43,057 nt of DNA from Octopus bimaculoides (lineage: Eukaryota), in NCBI RefSeq assembly GCF_001194135.2, contig NC_068993.1, positions 65,023,781 through 65,066,837 of the forward strand, written 5' to 3'. Of this stretch, positions 6,977-43,057 are shown piece by piece (the stretch's first letter is position 1; every line of letters starts with the position of its first letter). The notes under the pieces were generated by a model that saw only the letters and a program-made list of their open reading frames with translations, did not search any database and was not told where the DNA came from. A program made the translations under genes and the position numbers.

Positions 6977-7138
6977 AAACTTCAATAACATGGAAGTGTG
7001 CAAAGTCTGTCCAGATTGGCATGAAATGGGAATCCAAGGGAGATTTTTATCTCATGCAAACATGCCATTAAAAGTGCACATTTTGACTGTTCATAAAACT
7101 GCTGAATTTGATTTTTCCATCTACCAAAATGACAGAAG
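6977..7138 (+). CDS. CAPN15-like: Calpain-15/SOL-like exon 3 in window (end of CysPc domain)
   Basis: atgcAG|...AG|gtgagt, 162 bp, phase 2/2. NFNNMEVCKVCPDWHEMGIQGRF...AEFDFSIYQNDRR corresponds to CAPN15 [21 protein letters not shown]...LEFALFQEGSR. Confidence 0.9.
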
Positions 7139-7183
7139 GTGAGTTAATATGTTGTCCAGTTGATGTATTGATAATAATAATAA

Positions 7184-8274: not shown

Positions 8275-11200
8275 GGTCCATCCATCCATCACCCAGTGTT
8301 TTAAATCCAGATTTTGTCCCCGTTGATGAGGGTGGCCAGATCTACCTCAATGCCATAGCAATCGCCTTCACACCATCTCACCATCTTGCCCAGTTTTGGG
8401 TGTCCTCCTTTTTCAAACCAACCCTCCCAATCTCCTCCTCCACCTTTTCCTCGGTCTACCTTGCTTTCATGCTCCATTTACCTTAAATGCAATCANNNNN
8501 NNNNNGGTCTACCTTGCTTTCATGCTCCATTTACCTTAAATGCAATCACCCTCCTCAGAACATGCCCTTCATCCCTCCTCAACACATGCCCATACCACCT
8601 CACTCCATTCGCCCATTCCAACCATTCCACCGCTTCCTCCAACCCCAGCATTCCCTGAAAATCCTCAATCCTCCTCTTATCAAACAGCTGCACCCTACAC
8701 ATTCCTCTCACCATTGCTCTCTCGGTCCTTCCCAAAAGTCTCTCTCCCTCAGACACCATATTTCACTTCCATACAGCATTGCAGCTCTCACGCAACTCTT
8801 ATAGACCCTTCTTTTCATATTTAAGGAGAACTTTTTCCCATATAACAATACTCCACATTCCCTGAACTTCACCCAGCCAATTCTTGCTCTTGCTGTCACA
8901 GCTGTTTCACACCCATCACTTACATCCACTCTATCTCCCAGATAACAAAACCCTCTCACCGTTTCCACCTCATCACATAGCGTTACCTTTGGTTCTGCCA
9001 GCCCTGCAGTTCCTTTCTCACATCTTCCACAAACAAACTCTCTCGCCAGTGTTGGGGTCGCCTTCTTCATTTTAGTACACCTACCATGAACCCATTTCTC
9101 ACATCTCGTACACAACACCACAATTTCCATTACCCTCCTCTCACATACACCACATGGGTCCACCATTCTCACTAACACTTTTCCTTCCACCTCACCCACC
9201 ATCACCTTTGTCTTCCTGATATTTATCGTCAAACCCTTCCTTTCAAATGCCTCCTTCCATTTCCAAAACGTCTCCCTCATTCCCTCCATTGTCTCACTCA
9301 TCAGAACAAGGCCATCCCCATACAGTATCTCCATTATTAATTCCTCTCTTGCACTCTCCATCACTACATCAACCACTATTGCAAGCGACAAAGGTGACAA
9401 CACAGATCCCTGATGCACACCAACTTTCACCGCAAACTCCCGTGACAGTTCTGATCCAGTTCCAACTCTTGTCTTTACCCCCTCATACAAACTCATCACT
9501 GCCCTCACTATTACTTCTAGTACACCTCTCTTCCTCATTGCCCACTCAATCACTTCCTTGGAACCTTATCAAATGCCTTCTCCAGATCAACAAAGCACAT
9601 GTACAACCCCTTCTCCTTATCTTGGTATTCCTCTTGCAATCTCCTTACAATAAACACTGCATCTATTGTCCCCCTTCCTGGCATAAAACCAAATTGCATC
9701 TCATCCACATCCACCCCATTCCGAATTCTCCTCTCCAACACCCTTTCCACTATCTTCATTGCATGCTCCAATAACTTCACTCCCTTATACGCCCCACAAC
9801 TCATTGCATCCCCCTTCCCTTTGAAGGTCGGTACCACCACACTACTGCCCAATCATCTGGCATTCCTCTTCCGTCCAGCACACCCTGGCAGAGCTCCATC
9901 ATCACAACAATCCCTATCTCTCCACTTGCAGTTATCATTTCCACACTTACCAGCTGCTTTTCCTGTTTTCGTTTCCTTCATTACTTCTTGACTAACCCTC
10001 TCCACTGGCCCCTTTACCACAGCAACTTCCACCCTCTAATCCCATTCATTCTCCTCATTCATAATTCCCTTCATGTGCTCCTTCCAAACTCTTCCCTTGT
10101 CCTTCTCACTAATATTCAACCTTCCATCACTCCTCCTCATGCATCTTCCTCCCTCAACATCTCTTCCATCTTTTTTTCATTGATTTAATAAACCTAAACA
10201 CTCTGTCTGGGTTCTCATCCAGCCTGCTCAACCTCTCCTCAGCTTCCTTCCTCATTGATCTTGCAACCATTGCATCCCTCGTCTCCTTGTTCCAGCACTA
10301 TGTATCTCTTCGATCTCTCCTACCTTTCGTCCTTCCACTCACTTCGTCACATGCCTTTCGTACCCTTTCCTTAAAAGACTTTCACAAATTCGGTGCATCA
10401 ATGCTTACCATCTCCGCAACTCTTTCCTCAAACCTTGCTCTTGTTTCTTCTTCCTTCAGTTTCCACACCTTTCTCCTCTCAACTGTTCCCATTCTCACAC
10501 AACTTTCTTCTTATCCTAGTCAGCAACCACCAACCTGTGCTACAACTCCCCCTGGTATTGTCTTCACATCTATCAGCTACTTACTATTTTTCCTACCAAC
10601 CAACACAAAATCAATCTCTGTCTCATTCCATCCGGCACTGAAAGCAACCTTCTTTTCTCTGTTTTCCTAAACCCCGTGTTCGCCACACACAACTCTTTCT
10701 CATCACAAAACTCCAACAGCATCCTTCCTTCTACATTTCTTTCCCCAATTCTGTTTCCTCCCCCCCCCCCCATGCACACCCTCAAAGCCCTGGATCCATT
10801 TCCCAACATGTCCATTAAAATCACCCATACCCAAAACCAATTCATCCAAATTATGTAAGTTCAACCCATTCGCCCCATTTCATCAAAGAACCACTCTTTC
10901 TCAGCGATCCCTCTTCCACTTTGCAGACCCTAACCCACAAATCACCCTCACCACTTCTTCCTCAAATGCTAACACTACTGTCATCACTCTGTCACTCTTT
11001 CTCCTGACCTCCACCATCTTCTCACAGATTTCTTCCTTCACCAAAACTCCCACACCTCCAGTCCCCTTACTATTTCCTGACTACCACAACTTGTACCTTC
11101 TTCCTTTGACTCCTACAAATCTTGCATCCTGGCCCCTCCACCTAGTCTCCTGCACACAGCATACATCCACCCTCCTCTTCCTCAATTCCTCACATACCTC

Positions 11201-11760: not shown

Positions 11761-12578
11761 TTTTGGGGTATTATACTGGAGATTTAAAGGGAGCGGATTA
11801 ATTACTTGATTTCAACACTTCATTGTTTTATTTTATTGACCCCTGAGAGATGGTAGGCAAATATGATACTGGCAGAATTTGAGCATAAAGTGCCACTAGT
11901 ACTGCATGACATTTTGTCTTAAGATTATGCCAATTCACCAACTTGATGGGAAAAAGAAATTATATTTTGTGAGAAACTTATATGTTTGACTCTTAGGAAT
12001 ATAAACTTTTTATGTCTATTGAAAATAAGCCACTATTTTTTCATATCGAGTTTGGTAAGGTCTTGAATGTAAAGTTTATCTTTTCTTGGTTAGTGTCACA
12101 GTGTATGTGTCTGTAATAAAGTGTAATTATCTTACTGCTGTAATCTGCAACACTGAGTCAGTTCTTAGTCATACTTATTTCGTTTATTCAGCCAATACGC
12201 TTGGTTGAGAGGACTAGGAATAACAATATGCGTTGCACCCTTTGAAGTGAATAGCTTTGATTTCTCATGAATAATAAATTTACTTTTGATAGTGGTTTAA
12301 CCTCATAAGTCTTGATTGAGCATATCTACGATTCAAGGTGTTCTCCATAACTTATTTTTTCTGCAAATATAGAGTATATGGGTAAACATTATCAATGTAA
12401 TCTTTTTCTTTTATTACTATAGTGTAATTTAAGAGGAATTTTAGCTGCTATTTCTAATAGGTTGAGTGGATACAGAACCCTACCTTAGTTTTTGTGATGG
12501 TGGAGTAGAAAAAACTTTTAAATTTGTTTTATTTTATGACAAATTATAAATGTTATAAAAAATTTTTTCATTCTTCAG

Positions 12579-12778
12579 AAGCTGTTTTAAAGATGGGAAA
12601 CCTTGGTTACCTGTTGATATTTTGCTGCTTGTATTTAAGTACAACCAAAATGGTAAATGTATTTTGGGTGACTTAGTAGTATGTCGGCGAAAGATACAAT
12701 CTCACATGAACTTGACTAATGTATTAGAAGTTGGAAGGTATGCTGTTATCTGCTTGGGTTTTAATCATTGGGAAGTAG
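12579..12778 (+). CDS. CAPN15-like: Calpain-15/SOL-like exon 4 in window
   Basis: ttcttcAG|...G|gtaagt, 200 bp, phase 2/1. SCFKDGKPWLPVDILLLVFK...LEVGRYAVICLGFNHWEV corresponds to CAPN15 LLDLCILVFR...LEPGEYAVVCCAFNHW. Confidence 0.9.
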
Positions 12779-13199
12779 GTAAGTCATTCCTACATCACAT
12801 CTTTTATTCATTTAAATTTTCCTATTGTTTGAAAAGAGAATTATCTTTTCTTTCTGGCAACTCTTTAAATGAAATAATTTAAAAGCCAAATCAAAGCAGA
12901 TGATTTTGTTTTCTTTTCATTTTTGCTCTAATTGTGATAATTTTTTAAAGATTTCTATACTCTTCTATTGGTTTCAGTTTTTAGGCTGTGCTCATGCTTT
13001 CACTCCACTTTCAAGCATCTTAGTCAATTTTGTCTGTCTCTGTTCTTTGTCTAGTACTTAATTTATTCAACTTCTTTGTCTTTCTAATTTTACTTTATGC
13101 TGAAGGCGAGGTTTGAGCCAGATCAAATGTAGTGGTGAAACAGGGAAATAGAAGAGCCTTAAAATAAAAAATAATCTCGGTAAGACTAGAAAATAGGTG

Positions 13200-13960
13200 C
13201 AGCCAAGAATGCTGTTCTCTATTTTCAAATTGTCTTATGGGGGGATGCTAGGCAAGGGAAAAAATACAATGTGAGAAAATTGCCAATGTTCTATGATGTA
13301 AGGATCAGGGGAATATGGTATTTTGGATTACAAGGCAGGTAACTAGAGCCATGTTATTGTGGCTGAGAAATGTGTACAAATAGATAGTAGTACTGTTGCA
13401 TTTATTGATTCTGAAACAAAAGAAGTATGGAAGTGTTACTTTGACAGGTTGAATGTGGAATATGCATTAGAAAAAGTGGGTCTTGCTAGCATGGTCTTGA
13501 AATTGCTCTTGAAATGCTTAAATGGCCCAATGGGATATGGACTACTCAGCTGTGTAGTAAATGAAGTTCTACGTCAAAGTGTCATATCCAGTAACTGGTA
13601 TCACATCATGTTAAACTGTTATAAGAACAAAGGAGATGCCTTAGAGAATGGTAACTACAAAGAAATCAGATTGTTTGAGAAACTCATGAAAGTTGCAGAA
13701 TGATTGCTCTGTTTATTTGAGAGAAAATCAGCTGAGCTGAAATACAATATGGTTTGTGCCAGGAATAACTACTACTGATGCCATCTTCCTAGTGAGACCA
13801 CTGCAGGAGAAATACCCAGCTAAAGCTAAATTGCTATACCTAGCCTTTGCCAACCTGGAAAAAGTTTTTAACAAAAATTCTTCACTCAGTGGTCTATTGA
13901 GCACTGAAGAAATTTGGGCTTGGGGGGGGGGAGTAAAGGAATGGTTTGTGAGAGTCATAA
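13200..13960 (+). mobile_element. Decayed RTE LINE fragment (RT N-terminal part)
   Basis: NCYKNKGDALENGNYKEIRLFEKLMKVAE and PGITTTDAIFLVRPLQEKY..LYLAFANLEKVF. Confidence 0.85.
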
Positions 13961-14289
13961 ATGTGCCTATTTTTTTTTCTGGGGCAGTTTATAGTTTTAG
14001 TTGTTGACTGTAGTTATTCTGGGGATACCTAGCATATAGTTAATTACATTGACTATTATTATTTTTTTAATACTCATTTTACTAATCCTGGAAGGTTGAA
14101 GAGCAAAGAGTCCTGGAACCAGATATGAAGTGTAAACAAATCCTTTAGCATACTTTGTTCAGTGTTTTCTGATTACCATTAATATCATGCAATTTTTCTT
14201 TTTGTTCTTTTCCTTTTTTAATGAGTGTTTACTCAACCCTCTGCCACCCACTAACTGGAAAGTAGGAATGAAAACTGAGACCTTATGTG

Positions 14290-16059: not shown

Positions 16060-16240
16060 TGTCCACTACATTTATATTTTTTTCTCCTTGTTTTTCTCCT
16101 TATTTCTTTGTGTTCCTTTCAGTTGAAAAGCATAGCTCGAAACGTCAAAGACTTTCTCTATTCCCGAGCGTTAAACTAATACATCCATTTGTTGTTTACA
16201 CCACCTGTCTTCGTCTGTTGTTTTTTTCGTAAATTCTCCC
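16060..16240 (+). mobile_element. Penelope-like element terminal fragment with decayed hammerhead-like motif
   Basis: ctttCAGTTGAaAAGCataGCTCGAAACGTCaaag has the layout of a minimal type I hammerhead, typical of Penelope pseudo-LTRs. Confidence 0.5.
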
Positions 16241-16254
16241 ATATATATATATAT

Positions 16255-17478
16255 ACAGAAAACAACTTCTGTCTCATTCCAGGGAGAAAAACTAGAGGTA
16301 GTTGATAGCTTCCGCTATTTGGGTGACCAAGTTAGTAGTGGGAGTGGGTGCGCTGAAAGTGTAGCTGCTAGAATAAGAATAGCCTGGGCAAAGTTCAGAG
16401 AGCTCTTACCTCTGCTGGCGACAAAGGGCCTCTCGCTCAGAGTAAAAGGCAGACTGNNNNNNNNNNTGTCTTCGTCTGTTGTTTTTTTCGTAAATTCTCC
16501 CATATATATATATATACAGAAAACAACTTCTGTCTCATTCCAGGGAGAAAAACTAGAGGTAGTTGATAGCTTCCGCTATTTGGGTGACCAAGTTAGTAGT
16601 GGGAGTGGGTGCGCTGAAAGTGTAGCTGCTAGAATAAGAATAGCCTGGGCAAAGTTCAGAGAGCTCTTACCTCTGCTGGCGACAAAGGGCCTCTCGCTCA
16701 GAGTAAAAGGCAGACTGTATGACGCATGTGTATGAACAGCCATGCTACATGGCAGTGAAACATGGGCTGTGACTGCTGAGGACATGCGTAAGCTCGCAAG
16801 GAATGAAACCAGTATGCTCCGATGGATGAATAATGTCAGTGTGCATACCCGACAGAGTGTAAGTATCTCGAGAGAAGAGTTGAACCTAAGAGGCATCAGT
16901 TGTGGTGTGCAAGAGAGACGATTGCGCTGGTATGGACATGTGGCGAGAATGGATGAGGATAGCTGTGTGAAAAAGTACCACACCGTAGCAGTTGAGGGAA
17001 CCCGTGAAAGAGGCAGACCCAGGAAGACCTGGGATGAGGTGGTGAAGTACGACTTCTGAGCTTTAGGCCCCACTGAGGCAATGACTTCTGACTGAGACCT
17101 TTGGAAAGATGCTGTGCGTGAGAAGACCCAGGAAGCCAAGTGAGACCAAAATCCAAGGCCTCTGCCAGGGATAGACCAAAATCCAAGGTCTCTGCCAGGG
17201 ATGTAGCCAGCCCACTTATGCGTAACGTTCCTTCTTTGGACACTAAACTCCGCTTGCGAAGACCTGTTGAGGCAAGTGAAATCGAAATCGAACTGAATTT
17301 GTAGACTGGCACCCATACCAACGTCTTCATTGAACACTAAACTCCGCTTGCGAAGAACTGTTGGGGCAAGCGAAAGCGAAATCATGATGGCACGAGTACC
17401 AGTAAATCACTAAGAGCACCTTCCGAGTGTGATCGTTGCCAGAGCACCAGCTGTCTGGCTTTCATGCCGGTGGCACGT
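16255..17478 (+). mobile_element. 5'-truncated, relatively young RTE LINE (thumb region and 3' UTR)
   Basis: GEKLEVVDSFRYLGDQV..ARIRIAWAKFRELLPLL..RLYDACV*TAMLHGSETW..RRLRWYGHVARMDE..RGRPRKTWDEVV. The 3' UTR has 30-bp and ~95-bp internal duplications and leads into the tail repeat at the gap. Confidence 0.93.
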
Positions 17479-18070: not shown

Positions 18071-18994
18071 TTATGTATATATTAATATTATCTCAGTTTT
18101 AAAAAAACTTGACAATGTAAATATGTTAATAGTTACCATGGGTAGCAAAATTCACACAAAAAAAAAACAGGATATCACACCCGTTTTATAGGTAGAGATA
18201 CCAAGTTAAAGCGATGTATTTTGAGTAGATATGAATAATAATAATAAAGTTCCTTTAATTCCTACATATGTTTCAAAATGTATGTGCACTCTACTCCAAA
18301 GAAGTAAGAGGTGCTGGAATTGCACAGATATTCATTGTCAGGGAACCAACATATAGAAGCAAGACAAATGTGAAATGATAAGGTTACTTACGAGTTATAA
18401 TATTATATGGCCAAGTAAGTGACCATTAGAAACAAGAACACTGGTTTACATGGAGTTATAACGGGACGGAGGCTGTAAACGCTATACTAATGATTTAAAT
18501 TAAATGATTGAAATAAGGGAAGGCAAAATGGATCACAGTAAAGTAAACAAAACACGGGTACCTTAAGTGGAGTTCTGGTTTTAGGATACCTTCTTTCTTC
18601 TTTCTCGTCAGTCTTAGAGGTTCTGTAACAAGCCATGATTACTGCCTTCTGTCTTGGTTGAAAGAAGAAAAAAATGTACGTCTGCATGTTTATCCATGTG
18701 TGTGTGTGTATGTAATATTTATATATAACAGAGAGGGGGGAGGTTAAGCAATATGCTGAAGCTCTCTGGTTAGCTCTTTGTTATAGTAGAATGTTCACAT
18801 GTAACCTATGTCTACCACCAGTTGTATGTATTTGGATAAAATCTGCAAAGAAAACGTACAGTGAACAGTAAGTACACGTAACTAACAGAAAACATTCTCT
18901 CTACACCTTCCCCTTATAAATGTTCAGTGTTGTGTTAATGTAATCTATATTATTTCCATGTCCTCACATTCAAAATTATTATTCTGCTTTATAG

Positions 18995-19167
18995 GTAATT
19001 CTACAAATCCAAATCTGAATTCTGATCCTATTCCATACAGACTTGTACTCCACTGCATTAAAGCCTTTATTCTGAGAGAGATGAAGTTGGCATCAAGTTA
19101 TGATGATTACTTTCTTCTGGCTGACACCATCATAAAACTCGTGCTTACTTTAGGCAAAAAGCAAACG
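18995..19167 (+). CDS. CAPN15-like: Calpain-15/SOL-like exon 5 in window (SOL-homology region)
   Basis: ctttatAG|...ACG|gtaata, 173 bp, phase 1/0. GNSTNPNLNSDPIPYRLVLHCIKAFILRE...FLLADTIIKLVLTLGKKQT corresponds to CAPN15 HVLAVYSSRLVMVE...TLADAIILL. Phases match both neighbouring exons. Confidence 0.85.
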
Positions 19168-20099
19168 GTAATATGCAATTACATTTATTAATTTCTACTG
19201 TAGTTTAGTCCTAGGTGTCACTACTGATCAAGCAAGTGTGTAATTGGAGGTAAAGCTGTCTAGCCTGACTATCATGGATTTACTGTGTTAGGAACTCTGG
19301 ACCACTTCCAATATGTCCCTTTTAAGATGGTGGTTAAGCTTTGTGGGAGATGTAGCTGCTATTCTTAACCTGTTGATCTATCACATTGAAGCTGCTCCAT
19401 TAATCCAAACTCCTTTCTTATTAGCACGTTTGATCAGTTGACAACTTACTCAGTATTTTCATTTTTATTGTGACAAAACAAAACTGTCTTTAGCTCCTGC
19501 TTTTGGAAGAAGATTGTGTCCTTATTAAGGTTGCAATCAAGCAGAATCATACCAAATGCCCAAATGGTTTTTATCCTTGTCCTTCACATTGAGTTTAAAT
19601 CTCACTCAAATCAATTTTGTCTTTCATTTTTTTCGGGTTGATAAAAAAAAAATGTACCAGTTATTATTAGTGTTGATGCAATCAACTCTACCACTTCTAT
19701 GAAAAGTGATGAATTTGCACTAAAATTTGAAGCAATTCCTATTAAGAGCAGTGGATTGGCTGAATCCTTAGAGCACTGGAAAAATTTCTTTGCAGCATTT
19801 CTTCTAGCTGACTATGTTCTGCATGCAAAACCAGCCAACACCAACTTTATTTTGACTCTGGAGAAATGGAAAGTAAAGTACAAATCAAATATTAGATTTG
19901 ATGGTATTGAATATCCAACTGTCCTTAAAATTGTTGGCCTTAAATCATTATTATAGGGTGGAGAGTTTTCAGAACTGTGACAGCATCAAACAAAATGATT
20001 TGTTATATTTGTTTTGGCTTTTTTTTACGCTGAGTTCCAATGCCAGCATGGAAAACAGATGTTAAATGAGAATGATAACTATTACAGACATGATAACTA

Positions 20100-25059: not shown

Positions 25060-25235
25060 ATTGCTGAAAATGTTCAGATATATTGTTTCTCAAAAGTAGG
25101 GACAATAATTATGGCAGAAAACAATTCCAGTTATACTCCAGTAACAGTATATATTAATGGAAATGATAAGTCCAGAAACATTGTGTCAAGCAGAGGGTCG
25201 TTTACTACAGCAGATACTGTACCTCCATTGCATCG
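25060..25235 (+). CDS. CAPN15-like: Calpain-15/SOL-like exon 6 in window (SOH domain)
   Basis: Long pyrimidine tract, cccAG|...CG|gtgagt, 176 bp, phase 0/2. IAENVQIYCFSKVGTIIMAENNS...RNIVSSRGSFTTADTVPPLHR matches CAPN15 NVVSTRGSLRTQDSVPPLHR. Confidence 0.93.
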
Positions 25236-25479
25236 GTGAGTTCATTTTCTTTGCTGTTGTCATTGTTGTTGTCCCTTTTTCTCATTAGCTAGGATAAATT
25301 TAGTGTGTAGGTAGGCATTCACCAAAGCTTGCTTTTTGGGCCCCTCCTCTTCACTATTTTCCTGTAGAGAGGAATTTAAGACTGGCTGTTCCTGGAAGCT
25401 ACTATATGCTGATGTTCTTCCCCTCAGCAAAATCTGTAAAAAAAAATTAGAAAAGAAATTGCAGGTGTGGAAGCAAAAC

Positions 25480-26290
25480 CTATAACCAAAGAGTTTTAAA
25501 TTTAACTTAGGAAAGAGTAAAGTTTCTAGTAAGCAAGAAAACAGACAGGACCCTATCCTGCGCAGGTAAATGGCCCTCTCACCATGTAGGAAAGGTGAAG
25601 TATCTAGTGTAAGCTATGGACACACAAGAGGTACTCTGAAATTGCAGGAAGTTTAATGGAGAAAATATATTTTGTTGGTGGCAGATGATGTACAGGTATT
25701 ATAAAGTCTGAGTTCCTATAGGATATTGGTCCTCTTAAATTCTCTGGTTTTCTTTGAGAGGTAATAGCTAGTTTTTGTTACCTAATTAGCAATGGAGGAG
25801 GATATTCTAAAAGTTTAGTTACTAGAATGGAGAAAGTTCAGAGAGCTATTACCTGTTAGCAACAGAAGGTCTCTCTCTCTCTCTCTCTCCAAATGAAAAG
25901 CAGATTATATGATGCTTGTGTGTGTATAGTGATGCTATTTAGTAGTGCGATATGGACTCTGAATGCAGATGACATGCAAAGACTAGAATGGAATGAAACT
26001 ACTATGCTCTGTTAGATGTGCAGAATTAATGTGCATGTACAACAAATTGCAAATGTATTGAGAAAAGTTTGACGTCAGAAGAATCAGATCTAGCATGCAA
26101 GAGAGAAGACTGCATTGGGTTGGTCCTGTGACACATATGGATGAGGACAGTCTCATTGCATAAACAAGTGCTGATCACTTAAAGTGGCTGGAGCTCATGG
26201 GAGAGGTAGACCCAAGAAGACATGGGTTGAGATATTGAAGGCTGATTTCAAGATGTTGAGCCTTACAGAGGAGATAACAAAGGACCAAGC
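25480..26290 (+). mobile_element. Decayed RTE LINE 3' part with PHD remnant
   Basis: NLGKSKV, GKWP..CRKG, CKLWTHKR(Y)S, FV(G)GR*, KFRELL, RLYDACV, ERRLHW.G, GRGRPKKTW. Confidence 0.8.
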
Positions 26291-27069
26291 TGACTCAGGG
26301 CCATTATGGTAAAAATGATATCCTAAAACCACTCAGATATGTTTGTATGTATGAGGCCATTTGCCCACTCCTCTCTCCCTGACATATCAACCATTCCTCC
26401 CCCAACATCTATGGTACTATGTGGTTGCTGTACTCACTTGCAAGCAATATTGTATGTATTACATCCCATAACCTTCCAAACAGTATTCCCCCACCCCTGA
26501 ACTACCCAAACTATTTCAACCAATGACCTCTTTTCTCTGCCTTTAGCCACTGCTCTTCTCCTCCACCAGCTCTATTATATTCTATTCTAAACACCTCTCT
26601 GTTATCATTACCTCTCATATCCACCATCATAGCCACACCACTGTATATCACTCTCTCTCTCTTTCCCTTTCCACACTTGCTACACCTAATTAGACATCAT
26701 TGTATTACTTTCTATATTTTAGTTTTCCTGAGCCACTCCTTTATCCCTCACTTGACATCTCTCTGCATACTGCTATTTTCCATCATTTACACCCTTTCCT
26801 TCCTTCTTCTTCACCCACTAAGCTCCACCTCCATTTGTTTATTACCTTATCACACTCTTTCTCATCCCATCCTTGTTCCTTGAGAGTTTGCTTTAGGATC
26901 CCTTCACTACCTTTGTTTCTTTTTTTTCTCCCCCTCACATGTATACCTCCACTATAGCAAGACACCTGTGCTTATCCCTCTAGCATACTTTAGCCTTTCA
27001 ACATCTGGCATACTGCCACTCATCTTCACCTTCTCTCCATTCTCAATTCTTTTCTGCCTTACTAGTACC

Positions 27070-29664: not shown

Positions 29665-31567
29665 ATGCGTGAGACTACGCATGCGCATGGCGTTACTACA
29701 GGGCTCCCTCGCCAGTGCGAGAAACGCACGATAAATGAAATCTGTTAGAACACCTGAGGCAGGATGGCCACTGAAAAACCACCCACAAGATGTAGCACAA
29801 AACACACACAAAGAAAAATGAAAGAAATGAAATGTACACTCGTGTGATACATGCATGCAATGTACAAATGAAAGAAAAACATGCAATATGGGCAGTAAGT
29901 GCCACCTAGTAAAAAAAAACAAATGAGACAATGAGAAAACAAATCGTGATGACAACTGTCCAGGAAACTGGAATCACGGAATGTGAAAGTCTGAGTGTTT
30001 GTTTTTACTGGAAGGAAAGAAAATGTATGAGTGCACAAGTGTGTGAGAAAAAAACACAGAACAAGTGAAAGTGTCTGTAGTATAGACTGTGAAAAGTCCC
30101 AAAACACCGAGATAGAGAAAACCAGTTCGTATTAAAATTCCACAAGGACAGTACATTGATGAAGACGTCTGCGCAGGAACTGCTATAGCTGTGTTCTGTA
30201 TGTGTGGTGGTAATGATGTTGACAGTGGTAATGATCTGTTGAAACTTGGTGACGTCGGGGGGAATGCTTGTAGTTGGTAGTAGTAATTGTTGTCGTCACG
30301 GTGGTAATCTTGGTTGAGCGAAGCTGGTGGTGAAAAAGCTGTTCGTTCATGAGTGTTTGAAGAGGTACACTTTTACAGACGATCGACAGACAAATCTCTG
30401 TACGACCATTAGCGAAAACCTTGAAAAAAAATTTTCTTAACCCAAGATGAAAAAAACGACCGTGCGAACTCAAAAAGGAGAAATGGTGACGAATGGAAAA
30501 ACAGAGGACTCCTTTAATTTAAACGTGTCACACGGTCGAACACCAAAATATATATCAAAGATGATATACAAGTAATTACGTTATACTACGAACATTAGTG
30601 AATTCGTAAATACCAGTAATGAGACGATAGAAAAAACAACCGTATGAAATGAATAACAAGAGTTATTGTGTGGCATAAAAGATGTATGTGAGAGTGTGAA
30701 TGCGACACATATAAGANNNNNNNNNNNNNNNNNNNNNNNNNNNNNNNNNNNNNNNNNNNNNNNNNNNNNNNNNNNNNNNNNNNNNNNNNNNNNNNNNNNN
30801 NNNNNNNNNNNNNNNNNNNNNNNNNNNNNNNNNNNNNNNNNNNNNNNNNNNNNNNNNNNNNNNNNNNNNNNNNNNNNNNNNNNNNNNNNNNNNNNNNNNN
30901 NNNNNNNNNNNNNNNNNNNNNNNNNNNNNNNNNNNNNNNNNNNNNNNNNNNNNNNNNNNNNNNNNNNNNNNNNNNNNNNNNNNNNNNNNNNNNNNNNNNN
31001 NNNNNNNNNNNNNNNNNNNNNNNNNNNNNNNNNNNNNNNNNNNNNNNNNNNNNNNNNNNNNNNNNNNNNNNNNNNNNNNNNNNNNNNNNNNNNNNNNNNN
31101 NNNNNNNNNNNNNNNNNNNNNNNNNNNNNNNNNNNNNNNNNNNNNNNNNNNNNNNNNNNNNNNNNNNNNNNNNNNNNNNNNNNNNNNNNNNCGGGGGTCA
31201 CCAGTATAGGAAAGTTGGTTATACATCATTAGATGTATACCTGACCTTCCTATATAAAATTAAAGAATATATAACGGAACGCTGAACTCCAGACTATCAA
31301 CTTAAACAACACTTTATTTAGGTGGTAAACATATACATCTTTAGTTCTTGCTGTTACAGCTTCTGTTGTGTGTGAGCATAGTTGTTGGGACGTGGGTATG
31401 TAGTTGCAAGCGAGCTGTCGAGTGTAAGTCCGAAAGATGTAGAGAGACAGCTTATCACGTCCATGCTCATGGTCGGCCAACCGTAAAAGAGATAGAATTA
31501 AGCGGGAACGCTTGGCTGTTTAATTCCACGCATGCGTGAGACTACGCATGCGCATGGCGTTACTACA
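29665..31567 (-). mobile_element. Internally deleted Gypsy LTR retrotransposon, copy 1 (5' LTR 31205-31567; 3' LTR mostly in gap, ending at 29700)
   Basis: The LTR starts TGTAGTAAC. PBS TGGTGACCCCCG lies at 31203-31192 and a PPT-like GGCGAGGGAGCCC abuts the 3' LTR. Integrase C-terminal remnant FFKVFANGRTE.LSVDRL near 30365-30430. Confidence 0.8.
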
Positions 31568-31829: not shown

Positions 31830-32501
31830 AAAAATTGACAAGCTTCTTTCAGTTTCTGTCTTCAAATTGCACTCACATGGTATTGCTTGACCCCTATGGT
31901 TGTATTAAAGGATACAAGCCAATAGTGTACATGCTGCAAGGCCCTAACCACATGGCTTTGAAGTGAACTTCTTAACCATACTGTGTTGCCATAAAAAATT
32001 TGGACAATCTTTTTAATGATATCTAGAATGACTATTATCTAATGTTTTTTATACATTTTAAATATAGTAGAAATTAACTGCTATTTTCATCATGCTGAGT
32101 GACTGTTGAGTGTACTAATTACTATATTTGTTTCTACTGTCCCACTTTTTGTGCACGTGGTCATTCAAAGAGTTATTTTATGTTTGTCTCTTCTCTCTTT
32201 TGCCATTCTCTCTCTCTTTCGCTCACAGAGAGAGAGAATTTAATCTTAGAGGCAAAAAGACTCTGCATATACCTTTTCTGTTTTTTGGAAAAAGTGTCAG
32301 ACAAAGCATTTTTAATTTATGTGTGAGTGAGAGACTGTGCATTGTGAGGTGAACAACACTAAGACAGTTGATAGCCCTCACTTGCAATGGCCTCTTCGCA
32401 TTCTTGAGATTGAAATATTATTATTGCTTAAGATAACCCTGAGACTAGGGTCATGTTGTAATATTTACCAGCCTCTATATATAATTATATTTCTTTTTCA
32501 G

Positions 32502-32646
32502 ACAAGTTATAATGATTTTCACACAGAGAGAAAATGCCTACTACCGTATAAGTTACAATACAAAAGCTGATTTTAAGGCTAACTGTGTTAATTATCCTCC
32601 ATTGGGCCTACAAGTTAAAGCTCTGCACTCACCACGCCCTATATAA
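32502..32646 (+). CDS. CAPN15-like: Calpain-15/SOL-like terminal coding exon
   Basis: ttctttttcAG acceptor, phase 2. QVIMIFTQRENAYYRISY...NYPPLGLQVKALHSPRPI then TAA at 32644-32646; matches the CAPN15 C-terminus QVLVILSQLE...PPLTPEVAGLHGPRPL*. Confidence 0.92.
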
Positions 32647-32734
32647 AAATGAAAAATAACGGCAGCAACAAGACTTCAACTGTTGGTGAGTTAGCTGAAA
32701 GTTAAAATATATTCAGATATTCATTAGTTCAACT

Positions 32735-33442
32735 GGCACTATCATGCTATTAGCTGTCAGAAGTGAAAGTGCTCACTGCTAGTGAAGTATCTGCCTGTCT
32801 GCCTGCATGCCTGTTGCTGGCCTGTCGATTCTTTGGCTACTGACAGCTAATACCATGACTGGGTGGAGCGAGCTATATGTCTGTCTGTCTGTCTCTCTCT
32901 CTCTCTATCTATCTATCTATTACTCGAAAGTTATTGGAACAAATTTGACACCTATATCCATGCGTTTGAAAACACAACACAGAGTATAAGGGTACTACTA
33001 AAGCAGAGTGGTCCCGAACGCGCAGTCGCGCGTCCACCTTATTAGAAAACACAAATTTAATATAAAAACATATTTCCTGAAATTGCAAATTATTTAAAAT
33101 ATAAAAATATAATTTTCAACNNNNNNNNNNNNNNNNNNNNNNNNNNNNNNNNNNNNNNNNNNNNNNNNNNNNNNNNNNNNNNNNNNNNNNNNNNNNNNNN
33201 NNNNNNNNNNNNNNNNNNNNNNNNNNNNNNNNNNNNNNNNNNNNNNNNNNNNNNNNNNNNNNNNNNNNNNNNNNNNNNNNNNNNNNNNNNNNNNNNNNNN
33301 NNNNNNNNNNNNNNNNNNNNNNNNNNNNNNNNNNNNNNNNNNNNNNNNNNGTAGTACCCTTATACTCTGTGTTGTGTTTTCAAACGCATGGATATAGGTG
33401 TCAAATTTGTTCCAATAACTTTCGAGTGATAGATAGATAGAT

Positions 33443-33475
<33 letters not shown>

Positions 33476-33626
33476 TATAGCTCGCTCCGGCCAGTCATGG
33501 TATTAGCTGTCAGTAGCCAAAGAATCGACAGGCCAGCAACAGGCATACAGGCAGACAGGCAGACAGACAGATACTTCACTAGCAGTGAGCACTTTCACTT
33601 CTGACAGCTAATAGCATGACAGTGCC
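32735..33626. mobile_element. Foldback/MITE-like DNA transposon with TIRs of at least 264 bp in the calpain 3' UTR
   Basis: 32735-32998 is an imperfect reverse complement of 33351-33626. Termini are GGCACT...AGTGCC, with flanking GTTCAACT (32727-32734) and GTTCAACC (33627-33634) as a 7/8 TSD. Confidence 0.8.
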
Positions 33627-33635
33627 GTTCAACCT

Positions 33636-33641
33636 AATAAA
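33636..33641 (+). promoter_or_regulatory. Candidate polyadenylation signal of the calpain gene
   Basis: First visible canonical AATAAA after the stop codon. It would lie about 90 nt after the stop if the foldback insertion were removed. The gap at 33121-33350 could hide another signal. Confidence 0.4.
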
Positions 33642-35719
33642 ATCGTATTTAAATTATCATTTTATTAAAAACATCAAAATTTAAATATAAAATCTAATAA
33701 TCTTGATAGATGCTAACAATAAAGAAGTGGATGCATCTTGCATTTGTGAGGTACCGGATTTGATTCTACTGTTTGGCATCTTGGGAAAATATATTTTACG
33801 ATATCCTTGGACCAACCCAAGCATTGTGTGAAAATTTGGGTTGTTTAGAGTTAATTCCTCCCTGATTAAGCAGACATCTCATTAGGGCATTCTGGCAACG
33901 ACTGTCTCCTTTTTTAATTCAGATAAATTTTGTATCTGTGACTACCTCATCCATTGTGTCCTTCTCTCTCTCTTTTGAAGATAGAGCATCTATCGTCAAT
34001 GAATGACACAGTAACTTCCTTGTTGACGTCAAAGCACATCAGAGTGTGCTTTACTCAGTGAACCAGCTTTGTCTGAGTGATGATTATCTTACAGGTCTAG
34101 TTAAGTAATCACATAGAAGTAAGGTATTTAGGATGTTATGGTTTGCTAAACTATATAGCAGGGTTATTTCTGTCTGACTTCATGAAGACAAAAATTTGTC
34201 AACAAAATAAGTTGTATATCAGAGAATGATCAAAATAATTATCTTGTATTAACTATTTGTCTAGTTAAATACGTCTTCAAATCACATCCTACCGTATTAA
34301 AGGAAGAGTCACTGCCCAATGTAGTTGTATGTATAAATCAACATTTTACATCTACTTTCCATGTTTGCTAATATTAAAAAGGTTTTCTTCAACCCAGTAG
34401 CCCACCATTTATTGTTCCTTTGTCAGCACCCTGACGTTAGCTTTCTTCACTTCTATCATGTCTTGAAGTTTCCTGTTCCAGCCACTTGGATCTCCTGATA
34501 CCTCTTTTATATGACTATTAGTATCCATGCATATTACATAACTATATCACTTCAGTATCTTGCAGACCACACCTGATTTCTTTTGTGTCCAGTATTTCTT
34601 TTAAGCTCATATATACCTTGTCGCTCATTCATCCTAATATTCCACATATAACAGAGCATGCTTATTTCATTTTTGACTTGTTTTTTCAAATCCCCTGCAT
34701 TCGTTAACTCAAATCTCACTACCATGTAATTTCACACTTTGTATATAAGCATTGTTTAATCTACATTTACTCAGAGAGAGAATGAATGCCCTTGATGTCA
34801 GCAAACGCAATAGCGCCTTGAACTTATTTCACCCTATTCTTATTCTGACTATTATCCTTTTGAAGCACTTCTCTTCATCACTGATTAGGTTGCTTTGGTA
34901 ATGGAAGTTATAACCAATTTTTGTGGGGCCTTCTAAGCATTAAAAGGAGTTCATTTTACTGGTGCTCTGACGTCCAACTACATGTGTTATATGTAAAACC
35001 TTTTTGCTGTTATCTTGCTTGTGATCCTTGTACACCTCTTGTGCACAGCAATATAGAATTGAATACTCTGTAAGGAATTCTTCTCATTCCTCTTTTGTAT
35101 GCCAAGCATTGCCACTTGCTTTTTTGCTATTTACTAAAACTTTAGTCTTTAAGTTTACTCAGGCGCCTTGCAATTTTAGGTTTTGTTTCTATGTCTGAAA
35201 TTTCTTCTAAATCTTTCACAGAATCCACGGTCAATACTAGGTCATCAGCATGGGCAACCAGTCTATGTCTAAGAAGTAAGAGGAGCTGAGATCAAGGCAT
35301 ACCTCCACACTAAATTTATCACACTCGTTACCAACATTCACTTAGCTAACATCTCTGTTCATGAATTGCAGTGCTCACACAGCTTGTTTTCTTTGAGACT
35401 AGCAGACTACAGCTTCTGGTACCCTGTCAAAGATCTTCTCCAGATAAACGAAATGCTAGGTAGAGATGTTTACTCTTAGCTAAAAACTTCTTCTCCTGCA
35501 GTTGTTTCATTAGGAAGAAAGCATTAATAGTAATCCAGCCTGGCACAAATACAAACTGTTTTACTTCTAAACTGTTTCTCTTCCTAATCAATTGTTTGTT
35601 ACTTCTAAACTGCTTCTCTTCCTAATTAATTGTTTGTTACTTCTAAACTGCTTCTCTTCCTAATCAATTGTTTGTTACTTCTAAACTGTTTCTCTTCCTA
35701 ACCAATTGTTTGTTACTTC

Positions 35720-37373
35720 TATAGGAATAGTGGTTACACACCATTAGGTGTGCACCTACTTTCCTATATTAAATTAGAATGAACGGAAGGCAGAACTCCA
35801 AACTATCAACACAACAATATTTATTTAAGGTAGAAAATAGACAGCTTTACTCTTGGTTGTTGAGACGCCTTCTGTGTGTGAGAACATGGTTGTTGAGACG
35901 CCGGAATGTTGATGTGAGCTGTCTGGCGTGAGTTCGAAAGATGGAGAGAAGGCTTGACACGTCCATGCTCAATGCTGGCCAGGCAAGAAAGAGAAAGAAA
36001 ATAGCGGGAACGCTTGGATGTTGAATTCCACGCATGCGTGAGTCTACGCATGCGCACAGCGTTACTACAGGGCTCCCCTTGCCAGTGTGGAACGCACGAT
36101 AATATAATTTTTGGAGGAACGCCTGAGGCAGGATGGCCACTGAAAACCACCCACAAGATGTGGCACAAACACACACAAAGAAAAATCAAAGAAATGAATG
36201 TACACTTGTGAGATACATGCATGCAATGTTTCTGAAAGGAAAGAAAATATATGAGTGCACAAGTGTGTGTGTGAGAGAGAAAAAAACACAGAACATAGTA
36301 AAAGTGTCTGTAGAGAAAAAATCCAGTTCGTATAAGAGTTACACAAGTTGAATGTCTGTACTCAGNNNNNNNNNNNNGTCGATGCGAGTTGCGACCTGTT
36401 ACCTGGTACTAAATATCCTAGTCGGCTAGCTCTGACTGTTGTGTGTGAGTGGATATTCCACTCATACAGTGAAGATAAAACCGAGTGTGTTGATCTGGTG
36501 TGTCCCTGGTGGTGGGGTTGTTGGCGCACGGCATTGTGGTAGACAGTACATTGGTGGTGAAAACGTCAGCGCTGGAACTGGCTATAGCTGTGTTCTGTAT
36601 GTGAGTGGTGATAATGATGTCATGTTGACGCTGTTGGCGACGTCGGGGCGATGCTTGTAGTTCGTCGTGGTTGTTATTGTCGACGGCGTTGGTGGTCATC
36701 TTGGTTGGACGAAGCTGGTGGCGAAAAGGCTGCTTGGTGATAATGGTGTTTGAAGAGGTACGCTTTTACAGACAGTCGACAGACAATCTCTGTACGACCA
36801 TTAGCGTTGACCTTGATGAGTGGCATTGCTGGAAAATGCTGTCATGAATTCGAAGTTTTATAGGAAAGTGCCGTAGTTACGTATGTCAGCGGCGGCAGTG
36901 TAGTATTATTGGTTGGTAGTCCAGAATCCATGGCCGCGTTTGTTCTATAGTTGGGGTCACTATAGGAATGCGTTAAATAGCTCAGCGGGCTGCGTGTTTG
37001 AATCACGTCGGAGGGTCACCAGTTATAAGAAAGTGGGTTATACATCATTAGATGTACACCTGCTTTCCTATATTAAATTAGAATGAACGGAACGCAGAAC
37101 TCCAAACTGTCAACATAACAATATTTATTTAAGGTGGAAAATAGACAGCTTTACTCTTGGTTGTTGAGACGCCTTCTGTGTGTGAGAACATGGTTGCTGA
37201 GACGCCGGAATGTTGATGTGAGCTGTCTGGCGTGAGTTCGAAAGATGGAGAGAAGGCTTGGCACGTCCATGCTCAATGCCGGCCAGGCGAGAAAGAGAAA
37301 GAAAATAGCGGGAACGCTTGGATATTGAATTCTACGCATGCGTGAGTCTACGCATGCGCACGGCGTTACTACA
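35720..37373 (-). mobile_element. Complete non-autonomous (TRIM-like) Gypsy LTR element, copy 2
   Basis: Two 350-bp LTRs (37024-37373 and 35720-36069, ~95% identical), CTTC TSD (35716-35719 and 37374-37377), tRNA-Trp PBS, PPT AAGGGGAG, AATAAA within the LTR, and a 954-bp interior with an integrase-tail remnant (KVNANGRTE.VSVDCL). Confidence 0.9.
36988..37021 (-). promoter_or_regulatory. Extended primer-binding site complementary to the tRNA-Trp 3' end
   Basis: The + strand reads GGCTGCGTGTTTGAATCACGTCGGAGGGTCACCA versus vertebrate tRNA-Trp GGCTGCGTGTTCGAATCACGTCGGGGTCACCA (recalled). It begins 2 nt inside the LTR boundary. Confidence 0.85.
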
Positions 37374-40300
37374 CTTCTAAACTGCTTCTCTTCCTAATCA
37401 ATTGTTTGTTACTTCTAAACTGTTTCTTTTCCTAATCAATTGTTTGTTACTTCTAAACTGCTTCTCTTCTTAATCAATTGTTTGTTACTTCTAAACTGTT
37501 TCTCTTCCAAATCAATTGTTTGTTACTTCTAAACTGTTTCTCTTCCTAATCAATTGTTTGTTACTTCTAAACTGCTTCTCTTCTTAATCAAATGTTTGTT
37601 ACTTTGTTACTGTCATAACTTGGTCCATTAGTTTTTGCAGTTTTTTCTTTCTAAAGCATCTTCTTTACCCCTGTAGTAGTAATTGATGGTTATACCATTT
37701 TGCCAGTCATCTGGGTATGTCCCTGTGTCTGGTTGAGTGAGTGAGTGACTGACTGACTGACTAACTACTTTACTAGATATTGTCAGCATCTCACCAACTA
37801 TCCCTCTTAGATCTGCTACCTGCTTTTCATCATACTGCCTTAATTGCTGGTCCTTTTGATGAACATTCTTGAGATAGTTCCTCTTACATATTTTTCACAT
37901 TCAATAACCTCCTGTAGTCACATTTTCCAGCCTCTTTCTTTTCAGTGTCAGCTAGGGTAAATGCATCATATCATATTGAGCACACTTTTTCCTAACAGTG
38001 TCTTTACTCAAATTAAAAGTCTAGTTTTGCAGTCAGGTGCACATCACATCTCTGGCCATCTCATTACAATCTCTAGCTTTGTTTCTCTTTATGCTATATA
38101 ATTTTGTTGGCTAGCTTCTCTTCTATGTGCTTAATGTTGTTCTTTGTCCCCCACTTTCTTCTGATATTGCCAGGCTTTTCTTTTAGCATTTATGACTCTA
38201 CAGTAATATCCCACCACCATGTTACTTTACATCTGGGTGGAATCTTGCTACATCAACAGATCGGGTCTGTAGTAAACTGAACTAACTAATCTGTGTTGAG
38301 TAGTACATTTGTCACTGGAAGAAGTTACAATAAGTTGTGAATATTGTTTCTGAAAAAAGAAAGTCTAGATGATCCTGGTTGAATACCTCTGGTCATATGT
38401 TTACTTGATCAGGCCTGGGCTCTCTTTTTATTATTATTATTATCTATTAGTCAATGAGGAAGGGTAGTTCTTTGGCCTTTTATAGGATCTTCAAGAGAGG
38501 ATACCTTACTTGCTACTACCAGTCTGGAGATTGAACCTGAATGCTTGCAACAGATTGGATTCTATTAAAAGTATCCAAGGACTAGGTGGTGATGTTAAAC
38601 TGAGTGAAGGATTAAGTCTACAACAGCAGCAACATAACAGTATGTTTGTGACATAATAAATAAGAGCATTACCACCATTAGCTTAGAAATAGATTCTTTG
38701 TTCAAATCCAATCCAGTAATTAGACATACATGTAGGAATGAAGTATCCAATGACAACTGGAAACATTATTAATAGAAATGTAGCATAGATGTAAATATTA
38801 CTTAAAAAATGTTTCATTGTAAAAAAAAAATGATGTTAATTAGTCCAAAAAATGTATTAACAAAAACTTGAATATTTAATCAACGTAAAATTTTATTCTA
38901 TTTGGGATATACATAAATTAACCTCATTGAATTAACAGCAACATTAATGTTTTCTAAATCACTTACATTTTTCAAATTTTGTTTTTCTTTCAGTGTTTTG
39001 CAAACATAAAACATCTCTTGTAGATTAAAATGTTATTGGAAGAAATGGTACATGACAATTTTCAGGAAAGCAAGAAAATTTTGATTAAAATTCCACTTTT
39101 AACTATCAATTTTAATATCAACTTTTTTTTCTATAATTGTTAGACATTTCACAGCATCTGACAATCTGCAAATTAGGAATTTAATTGAAAGCAGTGCTTA
39201 AGCTGAAACTTTTCCACCAGGTTTGTGTGGTTATATTTCATTGTTAATATATCCACCTTGAGAAAGAAAAAAAACTAATTTACAAAGGAGTGTTTTAATA
39301 TGCAGCCTATATGATGAAACATTTCCTATTGAGTGCAATAAGATGTTCCTCATATGAAATATATTCAATGATGTGAAAAAACAAAGACACAATGGTTTTC
39401 TCTTGTGCTACATATAAAAGGATATGCATGTGAATGTATATGTGATTTTAGAGAAATATTCTGACCTATTTGTTTTTTTTTTTCTTATTGAAGAATTAAC
39501 TTTTAACTTGAAGACACTTTTGTCAATTTTTTTGAGGAAAAGGTGAGGATCAGTGATAATAGAAAAATATTTTTTAATCTTTTTTTTATGAATGTCTTTT
39601 ACATTGAACCTACTATAGTAGCTAAATTAGTTTTGAAATACTGGCAGGATATTTAAAAATATAACCATAAGAAAACACTAACAATAGTAACAATAATAAC
39701 AAAGAGGTTTAATTCAATATTGGATCCTAAATATTTCTTCAGAAGTGTATGAAGGATTCTATATTTGAGCCCCTCACTCCCACCCCAAGAAAACATTTAT
39801 TTTCAGTAATAGATAACAATATTCTCAAACAGTTCAGGGATTTTTTGTGAAAGATGTGCAAGATATTAGGTTAAATTATTAAAGTGAAGTCTTGAACAGA
39901 TGTTTGGATCAACTTTTAAGTAATTATTGTGATGAGAATACCTGGTTACAGTGTAAATAAAGCCTATTGCAAGTATATTTATTACGGTCTGTGATAATAC
40001 TAAACTAGTTTGTAAATGTTACCAAAATTCTTAACTGGTATGTTAGTTGTGATATTAAGATATTAACCCAGTGAATAAAAGCAATATTTATGTTAATGTT
40101 TTCTTATTAAAAATGTACTTAAATGTTATAAGATCCTAATATATTTGTTGCCTAAAATTATGATGAGACAAATTATCATTGGGAGACTTCCAATGCTGGT
40201 TTGCCTATATTTTTACTAGCATGTAATTTAATATACATGCAACTCTCTACAGAGAGAATGAATTCAGATAGAAAATAAATAAAACATTCTTCTCTTTGTT

Positions 40301-41705: not shown

Positions 41706-42040
41706 CGGTGCCGGAAAAACGTGTCCGGCGGCGCAAGTATGTGACTGCGGACGTAATAACGTACCTGGTACCGCAAGAATGTGCCCAGGGCTGCTCTTAC
41801 GTGCCTGGAACCTCAAGGTGTCCGGCGCGGCAAGAACATGACTGGGGACGAAATAACGTGCCTGGAACCGAAAAGACTGCAAGAAGGTGCCTGAGGCCGT
41901 AAGAACGTACCCTGCGTCGCAATCACGTGCCCGGCGCCGAAAGAACTAGTCCAGCGCTGCAAAACGTTACCGAAGCCGCAAGTATATGACAGGTCGCAAT
42001 AAGGTGTCTGCAACCGCAAGAACGTGCACACGAAGAGAAC
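41706..42040. repeat. CpG-rich degenerate ~20-bp minisatellite (~17 units) with a 97-bp higher-order period
   Basis: Consensus is approximately AGAACGTGCCTGGCGCCGCA. The block gtgtccggcg..gactg.ggacg.aataacgt.cctgg.accg recurs at 41721 and 41818. Confidence 0.75.
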
Positions 42041-42940
42041 TAACGGACGTACGTGCATACGAAGAGAATGAACGGACGCACGTACGTTCGTTTTCTTGTT
42101 CGAACGGACGTACGTACATACGAAAGAACGAACGTACGGTACGTGCGAAAGAACGACGAAGCGAACGAACGAACGTACCTTGCGTCCGTACGTACGAACA
42201 AACGAATCAATGTACGTACGTACGCCCGTACGTAAAAACGAACGAACAAACGATAGAAAGAAAGAACGTACGTACGTACATACGAATGAATGAACGTACG
42301 AACTACGAAGCGAACGAAAGATCAAACGAACGAACGTACCTTACATCCGTACGTGCGGACGAACGACCTACGTACGAACGAACGAAGGTACGTACATACG
42401 TACGAACGGACGAAGGAACGAAATAACGAATGTCCATACGTACGTACGAATAAACGAACGAAGGAACGAAAGAATAAATGAACGAATGTACGTACGTAAT
42501 TAAGAACGAATGAACGAACCAAGTATCGAACGAACGAACTCGCGTGCGTACGTACCTAAGAACGAACAAACGAACGGATGAAGGTACAAACTAACGAACG
42601 TACGTACGTACTAATGATCGAACGAACGTACGTACGTACGTCCGGAAGATGGAACGAACGTACGTACGAAAGAAGGAAAGAACGAACGAAACTAACGAAC
42701 GGACGAAAGAACAAAAGAAGAAACAAACGAACGAACGAAAGTACTATAGAACGAACGATCGAAAAAAAGAACGAACGTACGTACGTACGAACGAACGATA
42801 GAAAGAAAGAAACAAATGAACAAAAGAACGATCGAACGAACGTACACACGATCGAACGAACTAATGAACAAACGAACGTACGTACGTGCAAACGAAAGAA
42901 CGTAAGTACGTACGTACGAAAGAACGAACGAACGTACGTC
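42040..42940. repeat. Mixed (ACGT)n/(ACGA)n tetranucleotide satellite
   Basis: Directly visible; it produces the spurious VRSF/ERTN ORFs. Confidence 0.92.
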
Positions 42941-43057
42941 ACCACCGCCGCCATCATACATCGCCCTCGTCACAACCGCCGCCATCATACGCAACCCTCG
43001 CCACCAACATAGATCACCCTCGTCACCACCGCCGCCATCATACATCACCCTCGTCAC
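42937..43057. repeat. ~31-bp tandem repeat running off the window end
   Basis: cgtcaccaccgccgccatcatacatcrccct, about 4 units. Confidence 0.85.

Follow-up and report, generated by a model that had tools for sequence, protein, structure and literature searches.

The calpain-15 gene of Octopus bimaculoides carries a foldback transposon in its tail, 88 nt past the stop codon of one of its alternative last exons, which would be read through to give a long RNA hairpin in the primary transcript and which is a candidate for retention in a mature mRNA. The insertion lies in a stretch of 43,057 nt (hereafter the window), where the first-pass annotation had placed an inverted repeat at positions 32735-33626. 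Both a repeat finder and the alignment of the two arms recovered the repeat at exactly these positions, and it was the sole long near-perfect inverted repeat when the whole 43-kb window was scanned. The left arm (32735-32998, 264 nt) starts with GGCACTATCATGC and the right arm (33351-33626, 276 nt) ends with GCATGACAGTGCC. Global alignment of the left arm to the reverse complement of the right gave 259 matches, 5 mismatches and 12 gap positions, i.e. 98% identity and an arm divergence of 1.9%. All 12 gap positions fall within microsatellites, (TCTGCCTG)n and (TCTG)n(TC)n(TATC)n, three microsatellite lengths being different between the arms. Each of the 24-34-nt pieces taken from the arms has exactly two copies in the window, one on either strand, where shuffled sequence predicts 0.00 copies.

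The two arms mirror each other in their finer structure as well. Both ends read GGCACT[A/G]TCATGC..., giving GG...CC termini, and each arm repeats its own terminal motif, in inverted orientation, some 90 nt further in. In the left arm this sub-terminal inverted repeat spans 32742-32858 (32742-32769 pairs with 32831-32858 at 86%), with its mirror in the right arm at 33494-33522 and 33592-33620; the only other repeats within the arms are microsatellites with periods of 4 and 8. Inward of the left arm lies a segment of 122 nt that is partnerless in the assembled sequence (32999-33120), consisting of a GC-rich palindromic stretch followed by an A/T-rich tail, the latter with AATATA/TATAAA variants and neither AATAAA nor ATTAAA. 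This segment borders an assembly gap of 230 N (33121-33350, estimated length) at the centre of the palindrome, and the right arm begins exactly at the other edge of the gap. Because it is the gap, and not a loss of complementarity, that limits the pairing of the arms, the 264 bp are a lower bound, as was proposed in the first-pass annotation (a hairpin of at least 264 bp); in a symmetrical element, the arms would be longer than 386 bp. The total length of the element, about 0.9 kb, is likewise an assembly estimate that includes the gap. The region is non-coding and reading frame is therefore irrelevant to the element: its four stop-to-stop ORFs (55-68 aa) had no Pfam match, with the gap estimated at just 230 nt, and no Rfam family was matched between 32400 and 34000 at a permissive threshold.

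The host gene had been recognised as a calpain, an identification that the ortholog cluster and the exon mapping now refine to calpain-15, a SOL-type calpain. Two plus-strand ORF pieces match Peptidase_C2, the calpain catalytic domain, in Pfam. An exhaustive search of representative proteins with two of the exons led to an 822-aa protein (P0001, 96% identical), whose 90% cluster comprises calpain-15 isoforms from O. sinensis, O. bimaculoides and O. vulgaris. With tblastn, seven exons were located on the plus strand (1622-1783, 3345-3509, 6975-7139, 12577-12786, 18991-19170, 25060-25236 and 32500-32643). The gene product combines RanBP-type zinc ribbons at the N-terminus, a Peptidase_C2 core and a CalpD_C (SOL-homology) C-terminus, all as Pfam families. 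The introns of the gene also contain ORF fragments which by eye resemble degraded retroelements of reverse-transcriptase type (8711-9565, minus strand; 16175-17056, 13347-14004 and 25758-26309, plus strand), the retroelement-like ORF on the minus strand being 285 aa long. A long low-complexity tandem array at 41800-43057 is open in several frames on both strands, with ERTNERT.../VRSFVRS... translations.

The 3' end of calpain-15 is organised as a set of alternative last exons. The penultimate coding exon (25060-25236, plus strand; 100% identity to P0155 and P0151 by tblastn) ends in a CG/GTGAGT donor that joins either 32502 or 38994. The proximal terminal coding exon (32502-32646, plus strand) follows a ttttcag acceptor, encodes ..QVIMIFTQ...HSPRPI, stops at TAA 32644-32646 and is 100% identical to the C-terminus of O. 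bimaculoides calpain-15 isoform X1 (P0155, aa 775-822). About 6.3 kb downstream, annotation and tblastn place a distal alternative terminal coding exon (R/VLQT*; 38994-39009, plus strand), which is used by isoforms X2 of O. bimaculoides and X3 of O. sinensis (ending ...PPLHRVLQT). An older O. bimaculoides gene model has a further annotated alternative C-terminal exon at 39145-39198, also on the plus strand (HFTASDNLQIRNLIESSA). The VLQT* exon is conserved in three Octopus species, at 65310-65324 of the O. sinensis locus and 61968-61982 of the O. vulgaris locus, and in all three the distal exons are in the correct phase relative to the donor at 25236 and have AG acceptors and polypyrimidine tracts. 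These distal terminal exons share the donor at 25236 with the exon at 32502, which makes the latter the proximal partner in a pair of alternative last exons. The distal exons had been missed in the first-pass annotation; going by the gene annotation, the element is intronic in their isoforms. In O. vulgaris, one annotated isoform (P0156) departs from the proximal exon beyond ..DFKAN and terminates in the distal exon, read in another frame. We considered whether the annotated range of the gene reflects a long 3' UTR and rejected this, as the range ends exactly at the stop of the VLQT isoform and thus gives the extent of the coding sequence.

The corresponding loci of two relatives, obtained by look-up of the longest isoforms, supply the empty sites of the insertion, as was foreseen when presence or absence in related species was suggested as a check: the element is absent from O. 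sinensis (L001) and from O. vulgaris (L002). Against both loci, one alignment of the window stops at 32733 and another starts at 33627, with an overlap of 7 bp between them. Both empty sites read ...TTCACCAGTTCAACCTAATAAAATC... and contain the 8-bp target GTTCAACC once. In O. bimaculoides the right copy of the target-site duplication (TSD; 33627-33634) is GTTCAACC as in the empty site, and the left copy (32727-32734) is GTTCAACT, whose last base is unlike the target, so that the two copies are identical at 7/8 positions. An insertion with long terminal inverted repeats (TIRs) and an 8-bp TSD, as had been described, is therefore borne out, with one TSD position changed. The distance from the stop codon given in the first-pass annotation was also correct, as 88 nt (32647-32734) separate the TAA from the left arm. 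Because the empty sites carry a single target and the right TSD copy matches it, the inverted arrangement is a true insertion rather than an artefact of mirrored reads or scaffolding.

Insertion probably took place in the O. bimaculoides lineage, after its split from O. sinensis and O. vulgaris. The flanks of the element differ between species by 5.4-5.9% substitutions, and an insertion after the split is favoured because the arms have diverged by only 1.9%. If the arms were alike at the time of insertion, these values would date the event to roughly the most recent third of the period since the species separated. O. sinensis and O. vulgaris are mutually close and count as a single outgroup lineage, and parsimony alone allows a precise loss in the sister lineage; it is on the arm divergence that we prefer insertion over precise excision. 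Within 11 nt of the left flank (32722-32734), three positions have C in the sister species (CACCAGTTCAACC) and T in O. bimaculoides (CATTAGTTCAACT), one of them in the left TSD copy, which may be ordinary divergence.

A separate block of about 3.3 kb (34953-38258) is also present in O. bimaculoides and absent from O. sinensis, where both of its junctions map to about 64557 of L001. The block has internal direct repeats (35561-36069 resembles 37024-37604 at 94-96%) and is related to 29665-31567 of the window. The proximal stop and the distal exon are separated by about 2.15 kb in the sister species versus 6.35 kb in O. bimaculoides; the extra length is made up of the foldback and this block, which together triple the distance.

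The element is assigned to the non-autonomous class II (cut-and-paste) transposons with a foldback architecture by its inverted repeats, its TSD and the empty site. It has TIRs at both ends and a TSD with a single target at the empty site, and no capacity to code for a transposase. Its superfamily, for which the first-pass annotation suggested Mutator/foldback or hAT, may be considered in the light of several known types. The hAT elements typically produce an 8-bp TSD and have short TIRs (about 10-25 bp) that start with YARNG; the TSD of the octopus element agrees with this, whereas its GGCAC start and its arms of at least 264 bp do not. Arms of several hundred bp are typical of Mutator elements (MULEs), in agreement with the long TIRs seen here, but their TSD is usually 9-11 bp, and 8 bp lies at or below the lower edge of that range. 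The Drosophila Foldback (FB) elements have arms composed of tandem 10/20/31-bp subrepeats and a 9-bp TSD. Like FB, the octopus element is non-coding, with very long inverted arms, internal repeats and a short or absent centre; it is set apart, by description, by arms made of microsatellites with one inverted sub-terminal motif and by its 8-bp TSD. A CACTA reading of the terminus (..CACTAT..) was rejected, as the TSD is 8 bp instead of 3. Autonomous Merlin elements encode a DDE_Tnp_IS1595 transposase. According to PMC8101967, which summarises Feschotte 2004, Merlin elements have TIRs of 24-462 bp, a conserved terminal 5'-GG and a TSD of 8 or 9 bp. The arms of at least 264 bp fall in the Merlin range of TIR length, the GGCAC... 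start has the conserved 5'-GG, and the 8-bp TSD (7/8 identical) is within 8-9 bp. Judged by the GG termini, the 8-bp TSD and the long TIRs, Merlin would be no worse a fit than hAT, Mutator or Foldback, none of the three traits being exclusive to Merlin. Under the Repbase rule, a non-autonomous element is classed by the termini (positions 1-11) that it shares with an autonomous one (PMC4455052).

Further copies of the element were sought with three exact or near-exact patterns and with low-stringency BLAST, and none was found in the window or in the three octopus loci (about 190 kb of octopus sequence), the window giving only microsatellite matches and the loci L001-L003 nothing. In the JGI metagenome collection, the sub-terminal motif CATGGTATTAGCTGTCAGAAGTG had one match (L004 1646-1668, Ga0056126_10014915), which extends over only 23 nt and was set aside as chance, one chance match being expected for a 40-bit pattern on a rough estimate of the size of the collection. 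A degraded retroelement ORF (..CGVCGRSDCGNLIHGISCQKWVHKKCSGIKG..) encloses the match, and a YADD reverse-transcriptase motif is close by.

Two explanations would do away with a single palindromic insertion, and both turn on the unread centre of the element. The readable sequence consists of two contigs that were joined across the gap by scaffolding, and the same gap is present in GCA_001194135.2. The window is identical at a fixed offset, N gap included, to the O. bimaculoides locus L003 on chromosome CM046613.1; the newer release consists of the same contigs, re-scaffolded with the gap kept. A gap exactly in the centre of a palindrome could betray mis-scaffolding or chimeric or mirrored reads, the true locus having one arm or none, and gaps of this assembly merit suspicion in general: at two others in the window (10 N each, 8496-8505 and 16457-16466), the sequence after the gap is also found 43 nt and 251 nt before it, respectively, which looks like unmerged overlapping ends of contigs and hence artificial duplication. 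The foldback differs from these cases. Its arms are not copies of one another, with 5 substitutions and three different microsatellite lengths, an argument already made in the first-pass annotation against a mirrored read and one which our alignment upholds. Furthermore, each outer junction of the element lies inside a contig, and both flanks align collinearly to the O. sinensis and O. vulgaris loci, in which they abut with the 8-bp target present once; the adjacency and the inverted orientation of the two contigs are therefore backed without recourse to the scaffolder, and an error of scaffolding is not expected to yield adjoining flanks and a single target in the sister species. We regard an assembly artefact as scarcely credible, and the gap is most simply a consequence of the palindrome. 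It is also very unlikely that two short transposons, inserted head to head or nested, took the place of a single foldback. Such a history could be read into the sub-terminal inverted repeat that each arm has of its own, the outer 125 bp or so resembling a small MITE, and into the unread centre. Nevertheless, a single TSD brackets the entire structure, the identity of the arms continues over 264 nt, far past the MITE-like module and up to the edge of the gap, and the octopus sequence available (about 190 kb) has no solo copies. One foldback element, inserted once, is the reading that we carry forward.

The arms are predicted to form a very stable structure in any transcript that contains both of them. 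The predicted fold of the readable sequence has a free energy of about -540 kcal/mol and 266 inter-arm pairs, including perfect helices of 103, 56, 48 and 31 bp, in keeping with the duplex-forming arms that had been envisaged from the sequence. The left half alone folds no better than its shuffles (z = -1.45), and the local sub-terminal hairpin appears in the fold. According to this prediction, the duplex would be intramolecular, long and nearly perfect, which are the properties of an ADAR substrate. In Metazoa, hyper-editing tracks long, nearly perfect duplexes formed by inverted repeats (PMC5625713; see also PMC9989829). O. bimaculoides has a hyper-editing rate that is exceptionally high and a likewise exceptionally high proportion of loci capable of forming long near-perfect dsRNA, 4.4 x 10^-3 of random loci (PMC5625713). 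Palindromic repeats are edited without a partner, for instance the hyper-edited Harbinger repeat of Xenopus (PMC5625713), which is a palindrome on its own, as is the octopus element. The inverted Alu repeats in 3' UTRs and introns of human transcripts (PMC526178, PMC3458544) are likewise transposon-derived and give an intramolecular, long and near-perfect duplex within a protein-coding transcript unit; they are two independent copies of a retroelement, whereas the octopus duplex comes from one element. In human cells, inverted Alu pairs in 3' UTRs are reported to affect translation and not localisation (PMC3458544). The Drosophila hpRNA loci, a source of endo-siRNAs, offer a further parallel, as the octopus element would likewise be a long inverted repeat which Pol II transcribes and from which siRNAs could be diced; it differs from them in lying inside the tail of a protein-coding gene, and from the Alu and Harbinger systems in its place, which is past the stop codon of an alternative last exon and ahead of the poly(A) signal.

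How much of the hairpin would reach mature mRNA depends on the choice of poly(A) site. The first 80 nt past the stop (32647-32726) contain weak variants only, AATGAA at 32648 and AATATA at 32706. The first canonical AATAAA after the stop (33636-33641, plus strand) has CA and a T-rich stretch behind it, and 82 nt on lies a second one (33718-33723, plus strand); both signals are present in O. sinensis and O. vulgaris. The first AATAAA had been described as lying 1 nt beyond the right TSD, which agrees with its position relative to the end of the TSD at 33634. The proposal that the insertion pushed the original signal downstream is also sustained, as regards this candidate AATAAA, by the comparison of the three species: where the site is empty, it stands some 90 nt past the stop. 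The readable sequence from the stop to 33636 has neither AATAAA nor ATTAAA; the 230-nt gap could hide a canonical signal, and weak AATATA/TATAAA variants occur at 33059-33106 in the A/T-rich core of the element. Conservation of an AATAAA between species about 5.6% apart is weak evidence of its use. The sequence downstream is about 91% identical between species, equal to the intronic baseline of 86-91%, and we rejected this conservation as a sign of a longer UTR. Exact look-up of proteins (P0001, the 44-aa ORF MIFTQ...PRPI, P0153 and P0151) recorded no transcript and no independent genomic contig. In O. sinensis and O. vulgaris, a canonical AATAAA is found about 4 nt after the stop (L001 ~63161-63175), where O. 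bimaculoides has AATGAA (32647-32655); the proximal poly(A) signals may thus differ between the species apart from the insertion.

We propose the following sequence of events. When the distal exon at 38994 is used, as the annotation has it, RNA polymerase II would read through the element, and because transcripts with the distal exon must cross it, the pre-mRNA would contain both arms. Pairing of the arms would yield a near-perfect duplex, 264 bp long or more, of the type that ADAR hyper-edits, and in isoforms with the distal exon the element would be spliced out with its intron. In transcripts with the proximal exon, continued use of the AATAAA at 33636 or at 33718 would leave the hairpin in the 3' UTR; once the arms fold, the insertion would be looped out and the original upstream UTR set beside the AATAAA. 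On balance, we lean towards a mature X1/X3 mRNA that carries the whole hairpin in its 3' UTR through one of these two signals.

A hairpin confined to the pre-mRNA is a less likely outcome that still deserves serious consideration. Proximal transcripts may be cleaved before or inside the element, or usage may have shifted to the distal exon; in one variant of this explanation, the insertion weakened the proximal site and the mature mRNAs lack the full duplex. The AATATA at 32706, which lies 24-29 nt before the insertion point and is also present in the sister species, could serve earlier cleavage, as could the AATATA/TATAAA variants in the core or a signal within the 230 unread nucleotides, and the distal terminal exons are present and conserved. 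Set against these possibilities are the lack of a canonical AATAAA or ATTAAA from the stop to 33636 in the readable sequence, the position of the first canonical signal, directly past the element and followed by CA and a T-rich stretch, and the predicted folding of the arms, which would place the upstream UTR next to that signal. We consider very improbable a co-option of the duplex as an editing-, Dicer- or temperature-sensitive switch that governs the localisation or translation of calpain-15 mRNA or the choice of its C-terminal isoform. The element does occupy the very interval that separates the stop of the proximal alternative last exon from its poly(A) signal, the predicted duplex is very long, and ADAR activity in this species is strong (PMC5625713). 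However, the insertion is young and species-specific and bears no sign of constraint, its arms have already diverged by drift-like changes, structures of this kind are very common in the genome, at the frequency among random loci given above (PMC5625713), and the human inverted Alus are a precedent for altered translation and not for altered localisation (PMC3458544). Also very improbable is the specific form in which the foldback, at the proximal last exon of a neural SOL calpain, acts as an RNA-structure switch peculiar to O. bimaculoides, the formation of the duplex, its unwinding by ADAR or its dicing setting the use of the proximal versus the distal exon. If this were true, the switch would shift the ratio of the full-length protein, with a complete CalpD_C, to the form truncated at ...VLQT, possibly in a temperature- or tissue-dependent manner. 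The preferred reading remains a read-through hairpin with retention in the proximal mRNA as a candidate, and its net effect on the gene is most likely neutral to mildly deleterious, with no evolved function.

Taken alone, the element is one more transposon-derived inverted repeat in the tail of a gene, and the finding is a well-documented case of a common class, as palindromic repeats capable of forming dsRNA are known to be exceptionally abundant and hyper-edited in O. bimaculoides (PMC5625713). It also accounts for an assembly gap and marks a place that calls for long reads. What lends it interest is its location beside a poly(A) signal at an alternative last exon, together with its host gene and the empty-site controls in two sister species. 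Calpain-15 is important for neurodevelopment (PMC12002525), and the calpain family, SOL-type members included, takes part in synaptic plasticity in a mollusc (PMC5650170). Three close Octopus species with the same calpain-15 tail, only one of which has a palindrome of at least 264 bp, ending 9 nt before the first canonical poly(A) signal, constitute a natural experiment, and their comparison bears on the effects of a duplex on poly(A)-site choice, the use of alternative last exons, editing, small RNAs and expression.
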